From: Entomortierella parvispora E1425
Lineage: Eukaryota > Fungi > Mortierellomycota
Direction: 5' to 3'
NCBI GenBank assembly: GCA_020891255.1
Contig: LC659289.1
Location: forward strand, 2,034 to 66,033
DNA: 64,000 nt
A program made the position numbers and the translations under genes. Below, in pieces: positions 3,208 to 62,057 of this stretch; position 1 is the stretch's first letter, and the number at the start of each line of letters is the position of its first letter. The notes under the pieces are model-generated. The model ran no database searches, was not told where the DNA came from, and saw only the letters and a list, made by a program, of their open reading frames with translations.

Positions 3208-3293
3208 TAGTTTATTATAATTCAGGTCTTAATTGACAAAAGAAAAGAAATAAAAATAAAATGTTAGCAATCTTAAAAGGACCAGGTTTATAA
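3208..3293 (+). pseudogene. Shadow of atp9 leader and first codons
   Basis: 3208-3239 matches 4174-4205 at 30/32 nt; then AAAATGTTA (ATG at 3261) giving MLAILKGPGL* versus Atp9 [12 protein letters not shown]. Confidence 0.6.
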
Positions 3294-3373
3294 AAGGTTT
3301 AGATTTTTTATATAGCACTAGATTAATTAAAGAAGAAAAGAACTCCTTTATTGTTTCATCTAAATTACATGAT

Positions 3374-3940
3374 ATGCTAATTGGTATATGTTTAGGTGAT
3401 TTGTATATTAATAGAAGAAGTATTAATTCATATTTATATTTTCATCAGGGACTTTTAAATAAAGAGTATCTTTATCACTTATTTGAATTATTTTTGAGTT
3501 ATTCTAATTATAAGGCTCCAATTTATAAAGAATATTTAAATAATAAATCCAATAAAATATATAATTCTACTTTTTCAATATGTTGTCATTGCCCTGTTTT
3601 AATTATTATCATGAATTATTCTATGTTGATAAGATTAAAATAGTTCCATTGAATATTGGTGAATTATTAAATGCTAGATCTTTAGCTTATTGGGCAATAG
3701 ACGATAGCTTTAAAATTGAAAGTGGATTTTATTTAAATACCAACTCTTTTACTTTAAGTGAAGTAGAATTATAAATTAATGTTTAAAAGAAAATTTTTAT
3801 TTAAATTGTACGAATCATAATAAAGGAAGAGATCAATATATAATATATATTAGAATTGAATCAATGATTAAATTTATATCTTTTGTTACACCATATTTTC
3901 ATGAATCTATGATGTATAAATTAACTGCTTATATATTATA
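3374..3940 (+). pseudogene. Frameshifted LAGLIDADG (type 2) homing endonuclease
   Basis: LIGICLGD motif, AYWAIDD motif and C-terminal HESMMYKL split over ORFs 3374-3643, 3580-3774 and downstream. Confidence 0.85.
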
Positions 3941-4227
3941 ATATTTATTTAGTGTCTGGTAAGGACTTTATCAATATATTAGTAAGCCTTTTATTTTTCA
4001 TTACTATTCAAATGAACACCCTCAGTAGGCTTATTTCAAATATAGTTGTTATAAAAATTCTTTTTTATAAAAACATTCTTTTAAAAATCTTTTTTTTTAG
4101 AAATTACAAAAATCTTAAGTGGTCATCAATTATTTTTACCGTTATTAATAAATAATAAGAATTGATTAAAATTTAGTTTATTATAAATCTGGTCTTAATT
4201 GACAAGATACATATATATATATTTAAA

Positions 4228-4449
4228 ATGTTACAAAGCGCAAAAATCATAGGTGCAGGATTAGCTACAATCGGATTAGCAGGTGCAGGTGTTGGAATTG
4301 GAACAGTATTCGCGGCCTTAGTAAACTCTACGGCTAGAAACCCTTCAATCAAAGCTCAATTATTCTCTTATACTATCCTTGGTTTCGCATTAACGGAGGC
4401 AATTGGATTATTTGCTTTAATGATGGCTTTCTTGTTACTTTACTCATAA
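4228..4449 (+). CDS. atp9: ATP synthase subunit c
   Basis: [17 protein letters not shown]...RNPS...GFALTEA. Confidence 0.99.
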
Positions 4450-4500
4450 TTTTAACAAGTGCAAAATCCCCCTTTTTAATTAAATACTTATAAAAATACA

Positions 4501-5232
4501 ATGAATACAATATATAATTTAATTTTCAATTACTTTAATAGTAGTTTTGACTCCATTAATTTGGAAAATTTCCTTATTATTTTAGATTTTATTGGTCCTG
4601 AATTTTCTACAGATTCTACTAATATTATTCTATTATGCTCTAGCATGGTTCCTATTAAAATTTATAGTAATGCAGATACTATGAAACAAGATATACTAAA
4701 AGATAATTTTAAAAAAGTAGGTGTGTATAGATGGATTAACAATGATAATAATAAGACTTACGTGGGAAGTTCTATTAATTTATCTAATCGATTTAGACTT
4801 TATTTTAATAATGATTTTATTTCTGATAAAACCAGAAGTAAAAGTTTAATCCATGACGCACTTACTTTATACGGTTATTCAAAATTCACTCTAGAAATAT
4901 TGGAGTATTGCGATAAAAGTTCAGTACTAAGTAGAGAGCAGCATTATCTGGATACTTTAAATCCAGAGTATAATCTGTTAAAAATAGCAGGTAATTCTAC
5001 CGGATTTAAACATTCAGAGGAATCTATATTGAAAAGAGTAACAGCTTTTACAGAAAACAAAAAAGCTAGAAAAGCTTTAAACCTTTTAAAATTAAAAGAA
5101 AATATTAAAGAATATAAGATTTCTATTAATTTCCCTTTACAAGGTTCAAAAAGATCTCTCGAAACTATAGAATTAATGCGGAAAAATCACTCTAGAAGTA
5201 AAACAGTTTACGAATATAAATCAGATAAATAA
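4501..5232 (+). CDS. Free-standing GIY-YIG endonuclease (C-terminus probably truncated)
   Basis: GVYRWINNDNNKTYVGSS, LSREQHYLD, PEYNLLKIAG. Confidence 0.88.
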   Translation: MNTIYNLIFNYFNSSFDSINLENFLIILDFIGPEFSTDSTNIILLCSSMVPIKIYSNADTMKQDILKDNFKKVGVYRWINNDNNKTYVGSSINLSNRFRLYFNNDFISDKTRSKSLIHDALTLYGYSKFTLEILEYCDKSSVLSREQHYLDTLNPEYNLLKIAGNSTGFKHSEESILKRVTAFTENKKARKALNLLKLKENIKEYKISINFPLQGSKRSLETIELMRKNHSRSKTVYEYKSDK

Positions 5233-5406
5233 TTTTAATTATTAAGTACAATTCTTTAAAACAAGCCCAGAAAATAATCGGATTTATTTGTGAATATATC
5301 GTGATATGTGTAAAAGCAAGTAAATTATCATATAACTCATCTTAATACTCTTTTACAGAATTGTAATAATTTTGCCATTAAAAAACTCTTACTCCTTTAC
5401 TAGGAT

Positions 5407-5444
5407 CTATTATTATACTCATAATTGTAATAACAAAATTTCCC
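5407..5444 (+). pseudogene. Shadow of atp9 3' end
   Basis: CTA TTA TTA TAC TCA TAA (LLLYS*) followed by ACAAAATTTCCC, mirroring the atp9 end and its AAAATCCCCC motif. Confidence 0.6.
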
Positions 5445-6020
5445 TTGATATATTATTTTTGTTAATTAATATTGCTTATTTTAACTATATAAATTATACA
5501 GTATATACAATATAAAATTTATATTATTATTTATGAATATCTTTTAAAAATTAATCTTTTATTTCCAATAGTCTTTGAATTCCATTCTATTTGAAAAAGC
5601 AGAGTTATAGTTTTTAACATCATATTTTTAAATACTTTAATAAGAGTTATATTTTAATAAGAGCTATACATAATATAGACATATTAAAATATTCAATTAT
5701 ATCTGAACGGTAGAAAAGAAATAAGTAATTTAAACTATCCAAAATTGGACTTTGAAGTAATAAATTTGTTTGAAATAACCCTTATAATATTTCAATAAAA
5801 TAAATACTAATAGCAATATTAGAAAAGCAAATCTATAAATTAAGATTATTAACAAGTGTTAAGATGGTATAGTTAATACTAGAATTTAAAATAAATTTAA
5901 TAGTAACATATTTGACATTTATTTTTAAATTTTTCTTTTTTATAATAATTTATTGTTATACTTACCCACCAATTAAAGCTAAACCCTTTTATTAAAAAAT
6001 ATTTATAAGAGAGGGGGGAG

Positions 6021-59669: not shown

Positions 59670-59880
59670 ATAATAAATAAGCTTCTCTGAAGTTTATCTT
59701 CAGAATTAATAGAAATATTATAAGAGAGTCTAATCTAAAAATGAATAAACCTTACAATAAACTAAAATTAAAAGAATAATTGCTTTTCACACTTACCTAT
59801 ATTAGAAAAATGAATGTTCAAAGTTTATAATAAGAACATATATTTAGTTATAATAATATAATATTAATAAATATATTTAC

Positions 59881-60014
59881 TTTTGTTAATAATATTAGAT
59901 AATTCTTAAATTATTTTTATAATACTATTTTATGTCATTATTTATCTTATATCAAAAATTATAAAATAATTAAAAAAGACTGGATTTATAATAATTTTTA
60001 ATAAAGGAGAATTT
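59881..60014. repeat. ~135-bp near-identical inverted copy of cox1 intron 4 segment 22656-22790
   Basis: Sequence comparison. Confidence 0.85.
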
Positions 60015-60271
60015 ATTTGTAGGAGTTTAATATTCTTTGGGACGGTCTTCTTTTGAAGATTTATAATTTATATTAATTATATCTTTATTTATATCTTTAT
60101 TTATATTTTCAATTTTTAGTATTGTGAAAGGTTTGTCTATAAGTAAACACTTTCTAAGCCCTTTCTCATTATATTATAAATAAACTTTTTATATTCTCAA
60201 TCTTATTAAAATTCTTTAAATTAAAACAATAATAAGACTTGTTGTTCAAGTCTTATTATCAAAGACAATGA

Positions 60272-60343
60272 GGGAATGTTACTTAACGGGTAAAGTGGTA
60301 AGCTTTTAACTTATTTATCAGAGTTCGAGTCTCTGCGTTCTCA
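60272..60343 (+). tRNA. trnK: tRNA-Lys(UUU)
   Basis: TAAG-CTTTTAA-CTTA. Confidence 0.93.
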
Positions 60344-60540
60344 TTCAACTATAAACTATTAACTATAAATAATATAGAACCTGGATAAGTCTATAGGTAT
60401 ATTCTGTTTCTTTATTTGTTTATAATCATAAATTATACAAAAAATTATGATCACTGAGAACAACGGTCATTAATTTCAATTATAATTATCAGTAATTACA
60501 TAATCTATTTATCAGGATCATTTATATTAAGATTAATTTA

Positions 60541-60625
60541 TATCAAGGTTCAGGTATCTTATCAAGGTTCAAGTCTCTATATATCAAGGTTCAAGTCTCT
60601 ATATATCAAGGTTTAAGTCTCTATA
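60541..60625 (+). repeat. Tandem repeat, ~4 x 22 nt TATCAAGGTTCAAGTCTCTATA
   Basis: Units start at 60541 (variant), 60560, 60582 and 60604. Confidence 0.92.
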
Positions 60626-60844
60626 AATCTTAAAGCTTTTTATATAATAAACAATATTCAAACTTTTCTAGAGGGAAAATAAGTATATTAATTCTTTCTT
60701 TTTCTTAAATTTCATTTCTAAAGAGAGGGGGGGCTTTAAAATGATCCTTTTAAACTTATCAAAATATATTATAAATAGAGGATTTTCTTTAAAGTTTAAA
60801 ATCTATTATTAATTTTTTCTTTTTTTCACAATTTCGGAGAAATA

Positions 60845-61770
60845 AATGATGTTTTAACATCGGTTGTTCCCATTTTAATTAATTCTAATGGGGAAACGGA
60901 TAAATCCAAAATTTTATCTGAAAATAAAGGTAAAACAAGAATTTATTTATGACTCATAAAGAATCTAATAAAAATATATTGGTAGTGTAGTAGATCTATC
61001 TAGACGATTAAAAGATTATCATTTCTCTTATTATTTAAAACGAACTAATAACATTATTAATAGAGTTATTATATCTCACACTCATTCTGCATTTAATCTT
61101 ACTATTTTTGAATATTTTAATATATCTAATCTATCTTAAGAAAATTCACGTAAATTGATTCTTGAACGAGAACAATATTATATTGACATATTTTTACTTG
61201 AGTACAATATATTAAAATTAACTGGAAGTCCTTTAGGATATGTTCATTCTGCAGAAACTCTTGTAAAAATGAGTGAAATTCAGAAAAGTATAGATAAAAC
61301 AAGTGAGAATAATCCAATGTTTAGTAGAATTGGAGAATTAAATCCAATGTTTGGAAAATCGCATACTTCTGAAACTAAAGAAGTATTAAGCAAAGCAAAT
61401 AAAAAAAATTAATTTAAGAAATAACTAAACAGAAAATGAATAAAGCCTTGTCCGATGAAAATAATCCCATGTTTGGAAGAAACCATTCTGAAAAATCTAT
61501 AGCTTTAATGAATAAAGCTATGATAGGGGATAATTATTCTATGTTTGGAAAATCTTATTCAACAGATACTTTAAATAAATTAAGTTAGGCAAATGGTACA
61601 ACTATTTATGTTTATTTTTTAGATAAAACTACTCTTGTAAATACTTTTCCTTTAGCTTTTAAAGCAAGAAAAATTTTAATGTAATTCATTCAACTATTAT
61701 GAAGTATGTTAGAAAAGACATAATATTTAAAAAACAGTGGATTTTATATACTGAAAATTTGCCTAAAAAT
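60845..61770 (+). pseudogene. Decayed GIY-YIG endonuclease
   Basis: RIYL*THKESNKKY, LILEREQYYID, ENNPMF repeats. Confidence 0.85.
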
Positions 61771-61982
61771 TAACTTAAGAAAAAGGAATAGAAGGAACTA
61801 TTCAATATAGTAACCTCGTATTTTTACACCCAACTTTTTATCAAGTTATTTTGTAGAATTTAATTTAGGGCACAATTGTTTATTTATAAATAATAGTATT
61901 GATATGTAATAATAAGTAAAAAATTTAAGTTATAACCTTATTTGTACAAATCTTTCTTAAATAAATAATTTAATTAAATAAT

Positions 61983-62057
61983 ATAAATGTTACTTAAATT
62001 GGTAAAGTAAATAAGTTTTTTTAATTTATTTTTCAGAGTTCGAATCTCTGCATTTTT
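61983..62057 (+). pseudogene. Eroded copy of trnK
   Basis: AATGTTACTTAA..GGTAAAGT..TAAG..TCAGAGTTCGAATCTCTGC. Confidence 0.82.

Follow-up and report, generated by a model that had tools for sequence, protein, structure and literature searches.

Free-standing homing endonuclease genes and duplicated host gene ends in the mitochondrial genome of Entomortierella parvispora

Results

Nuclease genes and displaced gene ends in the mitochondrial genome

The sequence analysed here (the window: 64,000 nucleotides, numbered from its own first base) spans bases 2034-66033 of the Entomortierella parvispora E1425 mitochondrial genome (LC659289; 66,033 bp). It was compared with a set of related mitochondrial contigs (L-numbered below), including near-isogenic metagenome mitogenomes. 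Across the window, tblastn mapped about 20 free-standing nuclease genes, counting remnants, with ORF domains of the GIY-YIG/NUMOD and LAGLIDADG_1 types (Pfam), and most of these genes are now dead. In the window, a C-rich motif (the C motif) is found 3' of nearly every gene and of many nuclease genes. The 3' processing signal of mRNAs and SSU rRNA in S. pombe is likewise a C-rich core (PMC4618339). Seventeen of 20 ectopic copies of host-gene termini lie on the same strand as a nuclease gene, no more than 350 nt from it and on the expected side; 5000 trials of random placement averaged 1.26 such copies and never exceeded 8. The structures that a preliminary description had named at individual loci are present and non-random, as judged by alignments, z scores and this placement test, and the displaced copies ('shadows') are not independent of nuclease gene position. 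That description had also proposed a single genome-wide system, whereas clade comparison divides the GIY-YIG genes into separate site-specific lineages.

Swapped 3' ends at protein genes

The atp9 gene (4228-4478, + strand) ends in a resident 3' terminus with a C-rich motif (4468-4472) and is followed by an intact 243-aa GIY-YIG ORF of the atp9-downstream clade (4501-5232, +), and then by a displaced atp9 end comprising last codons, stop and a decayed C motif (5408-5455, +). This duplication (resident about 4436-4478, shadow 5408-5455) was found via the relatives, among which L006 is filled at the site and L004 and L007 are empty. Near-isogenic filled and empty pairs exist for atp9, nad5 and cob, and in each the shadow represents the native terminus. 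The displaced copies of L006 and L016 are identical to the empty allele; it is the resident ends that depart from it, through clustered, mostly synonymous changes.

The nad5 duplication (resident 36109-36172, shadow 37100-37164; 89%) belongs to a cassette (36273-37189, +) in which a nad4L-leader copy (36273-36388) precedes a GIY-YIG pseudogene (36375-37103) and the displaced nad5 end (37100-37189). The pseudogene contains in-frame stops and is 91% identical to an intact protein of L016. A third nad5-type 3' end (33856-33892, +; 95%), 37 nt long and with a C motif, follows an intact GIY-YIG ORF (32959-33810, +) between nad4L and nad5. At cob, the cassette (38753-40221, +) consists of a resident arm (38753-39036) with no stop codon ahead of its C motif, a GIY-YIG remnant (39259-39877) and the displaced end (39938-40221; 90%). 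The nad5 and cob nuclease genes come and go independently: L023 has neither, L025 one and L024 both, and the encoded Nad1 protein is identical in all three. L016 carries intact nuclease ORFs at 6017-6772 and 9237-10187.

On the minus strand, the rps3 cassette (55929-57115) runs from a foreign-looking resident end of the last ~30 codons (57027-57115), through a GIY-YIG frame (56131-57024), to the displaced native end (55941-56006) and a C motif (55929-55933). The shadow is weak at the DNA level (z 2.4). The native rps3 end of L023 and its flank align to 55721-56006, and the shadow is 88% identical to that end, to which the resident end is unrelated; a nuclease-free allele of this site was found in a relative. 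Three ORFs had been listed as intact, and this holds for 32959-33810 and for 9149-10048 (see below) but not for 56131-57024, which has no start codon before the GIY motif and its first ATG at 56868.

The atp6 duplication (resident 25921-26108, shadow 27311-27498; 78%) is more elaborate, with an old atp6 copy (26189-27498, +) divided by a nuclease gene into a leader with 10 codons (26189-26272), a mid fragment (26322-26375), a LAGLIDADG_2 remnant (26596-27201) and the displaced 3' end (27311-27498). The nuclease gene is thus flanked by atp6 sequence in an old copy that retains its own leader, an anatomy that would fit a second gene copy invaded in frame better than a simple end swap. The resident arm is 93.6% identical to L011 as against 84% to L015, while elsewhere in the genome L015 is the closer relative, and from such comparisons the rps3 and atp6 ends look imported. 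Alleles without a nuclease gene were found in relatives for both atp6 and the nad4L-nad5 spacer.

Duplicated ends of rRNA and tRNA genes

A comparable duplication (resident 10094-10161, shadow 8971-9038; 90%) lies on the minus strand at the small-subunit rRNA gene, rns. The resident end comprises helix 45, the tail and a C motif (10101-10105); downstream are an intact two-motif LAGLIDADG_1 ORF of 299 aa (9149-10048) and the displaced end, again with helix 45, tail and C motif (8978-8982). A 'CCCTTGG' leader copy sits after this displaced end, and the second layer of the array is a GIY-YIG remnant (8118-8888) headed by the rns shadow. In L004, which has no nuclease gene at rns, homology stops at the duplication limit, 10094. 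Podila verticillata and metagenome mitogenomes have orthologues of the rns-downstream nuclease in this same position, and L037 and L040 contain arrays in which a separate copy of the rns end precedes every nuclease gene. Pairing in helix 45 is kept, with four of nine pairs changing on both sides over 11 copies, and the covariation score was reached by none of 500 shuffles. The shadow had been expected to be the native terminus; this was borne out at atp9, nad5, cob and rps3, but at rns it is the resident helix 45 that is nearer to nuclease-free relatives, the opposite of what a simple swap predicts. Genomes differ in where the rns shadow ends on its 5' side, and Podila verticillata has a helix 45 of the nuclease-free type despite carrying the nuclease gene.

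The trnK locus (60272-62059, +) contains trnK (60272-60343), a cox1-leader copy (60736-60786), a GIY-YIG remnant (60869-61666) and psi-trnK (61982-62059; match to trnK, z 17), where L023 has one trnK only. The trnT locus (58061-58583, -) contains trnT (58061-58132), a GIY-YIG C-terminal remnant (58374-58541) and psi-trnT (58520-58583; match to trnT, z 19.5), and this insertion is absent from L023. Psi-trnT is a decayed 3' part of the tRNA and lies upstream of both the nuclease remnant and the functional trnT, so the locus fits neither a 3' nor a 5' form neatly. To judge from sequence, rns and trnK share the anatomy of the 3' swaps at protein genes. Overall, alignment recovered nuclease-free alleles for atp9, rns, atp6, nad5, cob, rps3, the cox2 5' site, trnK and trnT; the 3' type is upheld as insertion of a replacement end together with a nuclease gene, with a nuclease-free allele in a relative at every site, and the rRNA and tRNA forms are real. 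The duplicate search of the window found no shadow termini at nad4, cox1 or nad3.

Host leaders at the head of nuclease genes

Copies of host leaders and first codons are more numerous in the window than the preliminary description saw (nad2 four times, nad4L and cox2 twice, and cox1, atp6, atp8 and atp9 once each) and mostly lie far from their source gene. That description had read the 5' copies as a mirror-image homing strategy at atp9, cox2 and, in split form, atp8. The three duplications are confirmed, but the strategy is only partly supported, the leader copies mostly lying away from their source gene. At atp9 (duplication 3166-3270/4132-4236), a leader copy with ATG-TTA (3166-3270, +) heads a LAGLIDADG_2 remnant (3353-3923, +). 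The cox2 structure (45793-46839, +; duplication 45793-45961/46660-46839, 78%) has a decayed leader with 40 codons in native upstream context (45793-45961), an intervening LAGLIDADG_1 remnant (45962-46657) and the functional leader and cox2 start (46658 onward). The atp8 duplication (12574-12683/28619-28732; z 38) involves a distant element (11887-12683, -) made of the atp8 leader with its first 12 codons (12574-12683) and a LAGLIDADG_2 remnant (11887-12432), followed by a C motif (11804-11809).

The nad2 5' copies precede GIY-YIG remnants in three places on the plus strand: 23682-23777 with 24014-24631 (downstream of cox1), 41640-41734 with 41802-42111, and 49169-49257 with 49416-50182, the last insertion (49169-50182) being absent from L023. 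The fourth copy, downstream of nad3 (5783-5944, -), has lost its nuclease gene, which is intact in L005 and L001. A nad4L-leader element (58573-59550, +) comprises the leader copy (58573-58632), a GIY-YIG gene with a damaged N-terminus (58691-59536) and a C motif (59545-59550). Additionally, an element inserted relative to L004 (2356-3097, -) and bracketed by a repeat of the trnI 5' part (3062-3097) carries ORF140 (2411-2833), which is not a nuclease ORF; a duplicate of the cox2 leader with its first codons (2808-2892) stands at the head of this ORF. In relatives, leader copies head intact nuclease ORFs upstream and downstream of atp9 and after nad3, cob and nad5, and intact ORFs beginning on such modules occur in L001, L005, L013 and L016. 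From their position, we read these copies as portable expression modules; where the source gene is adjacent, as at atp9 and cox2, such a module looks like a mirror-image 5' swap.

Discussion

The reading that we favour, at a probability of roughly 0.7, is that many independent, site-specific free-standing endonuclease genes of the GIY-YIG and LAGLIDADG types act as 3' end-swap units and also borrow host signals. The mobile 3' unit would consist of replacement last codons, or the last tens of bases, with a C-rich 3' motif and then the nuclease gene. The nuclease would cut nuclease-free alleles within the host terminus and repair would copy in the unit, leaving the old terminus behind the nuclease gene, while the clustered, mostly silent changes probably render the resident end uncuttable. 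This form would apply to atp9, nad5, cob, rps3 and atp6, with the same anatomy at rns and trnK; at rns, successive invaders would stack, each nuclease gene with its own helix 45, tail and C motif. In a second layer, host leaders with start and first codons would stand upstream of nuclease ORFs, and the downstream side would be occupied by host 3' ends bearing the C motif or by a copied tRNA. Their position suggests that these borrowed signals most likely allow transcription, excision and translation of the selfish gene.

It is possible, though in our view doubtful, that 5' ends are actively swapped as well, with a nuclease gene homing into the first codons of atp9 and cox2 (and in split form atp8) and bringing a new leader for the host gene, while the old leader drives the nuclease. 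Such a model would account for cox2, where the decayed, natively placed copy is followed by a LAGLIDADG remnant in reading direction and L011 and L015/L023 have nad1, a spacer of ~0.4-0.6 kb and cox2 with no duplication. It would also account for L001/L002, in which an intact 328-aa GIY-YIG ORF just upstream of atp9 begins on atp9 codons 1-9, and four synonymous changes in atp9 codons 8-13 occur in that genome only, in a stretch invariant in five others. However, a tandem duplication interrupted by an insert is symmetric and does not reveal which of its copies arrived together with the element, and homology between the real atp9 leader and element-less genomes extends over 245 nt upstream. In L001, a leader copy of this kind additionally precedes a nuclease gene on the 3' side of atp9, leaders of nad2, nad4L, cox1, atp8 and atp6 head nuclease genes far from their source, and one heads the non-nuclease ORF140. 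Moreover, both 5' nuclease genes of the window (atp9, cox2) are dead, and no near-isogenic filled and empty pair was found for any 5' site among the related mitogenomes.

An origin as intron relics, in which nuclease ORFs once fused in frame to an upstream exon were later copied with a piece of it, seems unlikely. The L018/L019 nad1 N-terminus is indeed joined to a GIY-YIG ORF (339 aa), with nad1 split but not duplicated, an arrangement like that of a group I intron whose ORF is fused to the exon; the old atp6 copy has atp6 sequence either side of its LAGLIDADG gene, and the nad2 modules carry about 35 or more nad2 codons. Against this, the nad4L and cox1 modules consist of leader sequence and lack exon codons, and relatives have no introns at these atp6 and cox2 positions. 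Rfam found no intron core around the atp6 and cox2 remnants, a test that is insensitive since the same search missed a control insertion in cox2. Generic recombination in AT-rich, repeat-rich mtDNA, unrelated to the nuclease genes, is very improbable. Repeats with no adjoining nuclease gene do occur (for example 47930-48132/57879-58081, 98%), and gene order relative to related genomes shows many breakpoints. Nevertheless, chance is contradicted by the placement test (17 of 20, 1.26 expected) and by the near-isogenic pairs, in which new end and nuclease gene arrive together, and shadows are absent at nad4, cox1 and nad3.

Intronless homing is familiar from the free-standing endonucleases of phage T4; one of them, SegB of the tRNA gene cluster, is a GIY-YIG enzyme outside introns that cuts the nuclease-free allele near tRNA genes with co-conversion of neighbouring markers. 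That system belongs to a phage and not an organelle, and is not known to leave a duplicated target terminus. The 3' design seen here is the known mORF 'gene hybrid' of Allomyces atp6, Rhizopus atp9 and Glomus. In the description of Allomyces macrogynus atp6 (Paquin et al., 1994; in PMC3630166), a hybrid gene with a mobile endonuclease ORF, a free-standing nuclease gene likewise brings a replacement 3' end that differs in sequence from the native one, now displaced downstream. In contrast to that case, the single genome of E. parvispora holds at least six loci of this kind, empty alleles occur alongside filled ones among near-isogenic natural mitogenomes, and an rRNA gene and tRNA genes are among the targets. 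The Glomus sp. hybrids (2013, PMC3630166, citing Seif et al., 2005), from the same broad fungal group, have carboxy-terminal duplications flanking LAGLIDADG or GIY-YIG ORFs, atp9 with a GIY-YIG gene being a common case. The accounts of hybrids given there concern protein genes and 3' ends only, with no rRNA or tRNA case, stacking, or leader copies heading nuclease ORFs. Megarioti and Kouvelis (2020; PMC7487136), who surveyed the free-standing nuclease genes of early-diverging fungi, report proximity only, with no duplicated rRNA terminus, helix 45 covariation, empty-allele test or general leader-module pattern. In the ascomycete Endoconidiophora resinifera, degenerate nuclease ORFs border the duplicated C-terminal parts of cob and atp6, and one strain has a complete trnA duplication (Zubaer et al., 2018; PMC6279837), but no nuclease gene is tied to that tRNA duplication and an rRNA case is lacking. 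Gene-end swapping, known for protein genes, is extended here to an rRNA gene and to the tRNA genes trnK and trnT.

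Nuclease genes in the window

The window is fungal mitochondrial DNA; an exact match to its atp9 protein assigns it to bases 2034-66033 of the 66,033-bp record LC659289.1 (assembly GCA_020891255.1). Besides rns, rps3 and the 3' part of rnl it carries 26 tRNA genes and the usual set of atp, cob, cox and nad genes, at a G+C content of about 23%. The E1425 genome announcement gives size and gene counts only, with mobile elements unanalysed and RNA-seq deposited under DRA013164 (PMC8759367). Using tblastn, we located about 20 free-standing nuclease genes or remnants, and Pfam searches assigned GIY-YIG/NUMOD and LAGLIDADG_1 domains to window ORFs. 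PF01541, PF07460 and PF07453 match 4501-5232, 32959-33810 and 56131-56868 (a GIY-YIG catalytic domain with NUMOD-type modules), and PF00961 matches 9149-10048 in two stretches (E 8e-44), corresponding to two LAGLIDADG_1 repeats. Together, these searches place a nuclease ORF or remnant directly 3' of atp9, rns, atp6, nad5, cob and rps3. The GIY-YIG frame 3' of rps3 (56131-57024, reverse strand) stays open from a point shortly after the rps3 stop and takes in the GIY motif; its first ATG/GTG/TTG (56868) lies beyond that motif. Short GIY-YIG remnants with no recognisable duplicated host terminus are found at 1819-1977, 14066-14294, 42677-42895, 52650-52949 and 55492-55631, all on the reverse strand; one of these directly follows nad4 and another lies between rnl and trnM.

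The preliminary description treated the homing endonuclease genes (HEGs) as a single genome-wide system, and the GIY-YIG tree speaks against this. The atp9-downstream genes of four genomes form a clade with 100/100 support, the nad4L-downstream and trnT-adjacent lineages are separate, and a family headed by nad2 codons includes the nad5-downstream genes. This division into separate site-specific lineages argues that the window nucleases are a set of independent homing lineages.

Duplicated gene termini

Comparison of the window with itself located duplicated 3' ends of rns (10094-10161 and 8971-9038, 90% identity), atp6 (25921-26108 and 27311-27498, 78%), nad5 (36109-36172 and 37100-37164, 89%, with a third copy at 33856-33892) and cob (38753-39036 and 39938-40221, 90%). 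It also located copies of the atp9 leader (3166-3270 and 4132-4236), the cox2 leader with 40 codons (45793-45961 and 46660-46839) and the atp8 leader with 12 codons (12574-12683 and 28619-28732; z 38), together with a pseudo-copy of trnK (z 17) and a partial copy of trnT (z 19.5). Two shadows (duplicate termini lying across a nuclease gene from the resident, presumably functional, end) were visible only through relatives: that of the atp9 3' end (5408-5455) and that of the rps3 3' end (55941-56006), the latter detected only through a relative's native end. The duplications of the preliminary description are therefore present at all the named loci. Shadows sought at nad4, cox1 and nad3 were not found (z < 0.5). 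Across 20 copies (13 of 5' and seven of 3' type), 17 lie on the same strand as a nearby nuclease gene and on the expected side of it; 10 of the 13 5' copies are directly upstream of a same-strand nuclease gene.

Replacement of 3' ends

Related mitochondrial contigs from soil metagenomes (handles beginning with L) were retrieved by searching for exact matches to the proteins of atp9, nad4L and, from a relative, nad1; the same kind of search with atp6 and nad6 returned only the E1425 genome itself. HEG-less alleles proved available for every site claimed in the preliminary description, each being nuclease-free in at least one relative. The atp9 3' end is uninterrupted in L004 and L007, and in L004 rns runs straight into the trnC region, with homology stopping exactly at 10094, the limit of the duplication. 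The atp6 3' end, the nad4L-nad5 spacer and the cox2 5' end are nuclease-free in L011 and L015, the nad5 and cob 3' ends in L015/L023, and the rps3 3' end, trnK, trnT and the GIY insertion site at 49125-50224 in L023-L026. Three of these contigs encode an identical Nad1 yet differ in nuclease content: neither nad5 nor cob is followed by a HEG in L023, only nad5 is followed by one in L025, and in L024 intact genes stand behind both. The nad5 and cob elements are thus independently present or absent among near-isogenic natural genomes.

In filled/empty pairs (alleles with and without the HEG) for atp9, nad5 and cob, the displaced copy equals the empty allele from the junction onward and the resident end departs from it by a few clustered changes. 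These recode two Leu codons in atp9 and comprise four changes in 20 nt, three of them silent, in nad5; the cob changes are likewise clustered. The shadow of rps3 and the native L023 end are 88% identical, and the last ~30 resident codons are unrelated to that end. The resident atp6 arm has 93.6% identity to L011 and only 84% to L015, although nad1, nad5, cob and cox2 all place L015 closer. A cob end with no stop before the C-rich motif that follows it is shared by the window resident and L011, and the stop is kept in the window shadow and L015. The resident cob frame extends about 45 codons past this end (39037-39188), giving 435 aa versus 385-393 in relatives; if the mRNA were cut at the motif, the resident message would be without a stop codon.

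The host 3' terminus is thus duplicated on both sides of a nuclease ORF, with a diverged resident and a native-matching shadow for atp9, nad5 and cob (in near-isogenic pairs) and for rps3. Resident copies are complete ORFs or a good tRNA, and shadows contain stops or indels. Judged by sequence anatomy, this design is the known mORF (mobile nuclease ORF) 'gene hybrid', and the arrangement of gene with C motif, HEG and old end that had been proposed holds, the filled/empty pairs showing the shadow to be the native end.

Layered arrays after rns

The LAGLIDADG ORF 3' of rns has orthologues 62-91% identical, and an orthologue also follows rns in the published Podila (Mortierella) verticillata mitogenome. 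A duplicated rns end flanks this gene and L004 has an allele free of it, the anatomy expected of an rRNA-targeting form of the swap. In the relatives L037 and L040 the arrangement is iterated: the rns end, a leader and a LAGLIDADG gene are followed by an rns-end copy, leader and GIY-YIG gene, then by an rns-end copy, leader and LAGLIDADG gene, and so on. The window has two such layers, the intact LAGLIDADG gene and, beyond it, the shadow at 8971-9038, which together with a copy of that short leader heads a GIY-YIG remnant (8118-8888). Helix 45 of this shadow is the same as that of the first L040 shadow, and both precede a GIY-YIG gene.

Across 11 resident and displaced copies, the pairing of helix 45 is kept by two-sided changes at four of nine pairs (13 cells), a covariation score reached by none of 500 shuffles. 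Either the displaced copies were once ribosomal, which would reflect layered invasions, or the hairpin persists because it serves the cassette itself. Two features fit poorly with a simple swap: HEG-less relatives resemble the resident helix 45 more than that of the shadow, and where a shadow starts differs from genome to genome.

The rns region (8049-12762) is inverted in the window versus L004 (6298-8169), L005 and P. verticillata (L036 was also compared), which have nad2 on the reverse strand followed by rns on the forward strand, and nuclease remnants occupy both ends of the inversion. L005 and L008 have rns next to atp9 in divergent orientation, the junction falling exactly at window positions 11728 and 3983. 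Both ends of L005, an 8.5-kb metagenome contig (1-450 and 8086-8456), are the rns 5' part in opposite orientation, 93% alike, representing either a real inverted duplication or two strains joined by the assembler.

tRNA loci

L023 has a single trnK, whose upstream flank matches that of the window trnK and whose downstream flank matches that of the pseudo-copy. The flanks thereby identify 60346-61985, which contains a GIY-YIG remnant, as an insertion between two trnK copies. The functional window trnK is identical to the L023 gene (72/72), and the pseudo-copy has 58/78 matches and falls below the Rfam threshold. L023 likewise lacks both the partial trnT copy and the C-terminal GIY-YIG remnant of that locus. 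The partial copy, the 3' part of the tRNA, lies upstream of the remnant and the functional gene in the tRNA reading direction, a layout predicted by neither the 3' nor the 5' form. The tRNA shadows beside HEG sequence are thus real at both loci, and trnT conforms to neither type. A 203-nt inverted repeat (47930-48132 and 57879-58081, 98%) comprises the last 21 nt of trnT and the spacer to 7 nt before the rps3 start; the second copy, ~170 nt past the C motif of cox2, is not followed by an ORF.

Leader copies at 5' ends

Compared with L011 and L015/L023, the cox2 5' structure, in which a degenerate LAGLIDADG_1 gene lies between two cox2 5' copies, is a genuine insertion. Copies of host leaders and first codons are far commoner than had been recognised, and most lie away from their source gene. 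The nad2 leader with codons recurs at 5783-5944, 23682-23777, 41640-41734 and 49169-49257, the nad4L leader at 36273-36388 and 58573-58632, and the cox1 leader at 60736-60786; the atp6 leader with 10 codons is copied downstream of atp6, the atp8 leader copy adjoins rns, and a cox2 leader copy sits on ORF140. Among the relatives, such copies head intact ORFs: the L016 GIY genes downstream of cob (nad2 module) and of nad5 (nad4L leader), GIY genes of L001, L005 and L013 (nad2 module), and two L001 GIY genes that start on an atp9 module, the first 5' and the second 3' of atp9. Over 245 nt of upstream sequence, the real atp9 leader is homologous to genomes without the element. Since the copies are mostly off-source and head intact ORFs in relatives, and the real atp9 leader has this upstream homology, we read the sequences as portable expression modules, the mirror-image appearance at atp9 and cox2 arising where a module sits beside its own source gene.

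The preliminary description had instead proposed a 5' strategy mirroring the 3' swap; the copies it described at atp9, cox2 and atp8 exist, but with most copies lying off-source an active mirror strategy is not established. Such a swap is possible: in L001, an intact ORF fused to atp9 codons 1-9 adjoins an atp9 with four silent changes in codons 8-13, a stretch invariant in five other genomes. A third option is that the 5' copies derive from exon-fused intron ORFs. Group I intron homing was rejected as an account of the duplicated termini, host sequence being duplicated, not split, and the resident genes being continuous and colinear with relatives. Intron models run on 45400-47900 and 26100-27600 at a permissive Rfam E-value gave no match, an uninformative outcome, as the search also missed a 270-nt control insertion in cox2. 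Portable modules remain our reading of the 5' copies, and of the proposals first made it is the 3' swap, with the same anatomy at rns and trnK, that stands, not the single system.

The cox2 control insertion (47415-47684), absent from L011 and L023, has similar intergenic sequence in L001 (4645-4933) and L008 (6008-6257) and resembles part of the last cox1 intron (23009-23090); by its sequence it looks like a small mobile intron-like element not recognised by Rfam. A shared promoter-like word, TACCGTTAT, stands at the start of the leader copies of atp9 and cox2; the window shows no enrichment for it (22 matches versus 19 expected). ORF140 (2411-2833, reverse strand), which has no Pfam match and starts on its cox2-leader copy, is part of an insertion of 700 nt with a repeated trnI fragment on both sides; at the N-terminus it is similar to a 309-aa ORF of L005 (1947-2876), also after a cox2-leader copy. 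L001, an 82-kb contig, has a 303-aa ORF of no assigned family starting on an atp8-leader copy, and on its reverse strand 15625-16491 codes for a protein of 287-288 aa in which Pfam recognises a ribonuclease III domain (E 5e-21), an unusual find in fungal mitochondrial DNA. In L018 (107-6014) and L019, nad1 is split after ~51 codons, its first part continuing in frame into a 339-aa GIY-YIG ORF, and an 807-aa ORF with no Pfam match lies on the other strand between the nad1 parts; a large intron carrying an inserted element is the probable explanation.

A proposed role in expression

Nearly every gene ends with, or is immediately followed by, a C-rich motif of the type AAC(T/A)CCCCC, and many of the nuclease genes are followed by one too. 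In Schizosaccharomyces pombe, a C-rich core signals 3' maturation of mitochondrial mRNAs as well as of the rRNA of the small subunit (PMC4618339); the window motif likewise follows mRNA genes and rns, and here is duplicated along with them. By analogy, the displaced end would give a proper 3' terminus to the nuclease transcript, and the resident end would part the host RNA from the nuclease message. Public run searches for RNA returned only soil metatranscriptomes, with 6-13% of words.

A more far-reaching reading, with a probability of roughly 0.4, is that the free-standing HEGs of Mortierellaceae are modular expression cassettes that capture host leaders at the 5' side and host 3' signals, with stacked helix 45-headed arrays at rns. 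Host leaders with start codons would be taken up as portable 5' modules, and C-core ends, the helix 45 terminus of the rRNA and whole tRNAs as 3' or punctuation modules. Repeated invasions of the rns 3' end would stack up arrays whose nuclease genes each have a paired helix 45 copy at their head, and the pairing could reflect selection on the cassette as an RNA processing signal, not a ribosomal past alone.

Discussion

The mORF gene hybrids described in PMC3630166 include Allomyces atp6, Rhizopus atp9, Mortierella verticillata cox2 and four Glomus genes, and the 3' swap in the window shares the anatomy set out there. In an ascomycete, C-terminal duplications of cob and atp6 are flanked by nuclease ORFs, and trnA is duplicated (PMC6279837). 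A full-text literature search, with Seif et al. 2005 outside its scope, found no description of an rRNA-terminus duplication with a nuclease gene, a covarying helix 45 in a duplicated rRNA terminus, stacked arrays after rns, tRNA replacement by the terminus-swap route, or a general use of host leaders to head nuclease ORFs of the free-standing kind. The 3' swap is therefore already known; its target range is extended here to an rRNA terminus and to tRNA genes, which makes the target set wider than protein genes.

The intact ORFs are predicted to cut the nuclease-free allele at the junction, and such enzymes, for which empty sites are known, are candidates for new sequence-specific nucleases. 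Empty and filled alleles in soil metagenomes offer a natural system in which to measure homing under wild conditions. Borrowed leaders and motifs for processing would mark sites of expression signals in a mitochondrial system with unmapped promoters and processing sites, and swapped ends can mislead phylogenies built on rRNA or gene ends. Through terminus replacement, a selfish nuclease can invade essential intron-free genes without killing them, and pieces of genes are shifted between lineages.
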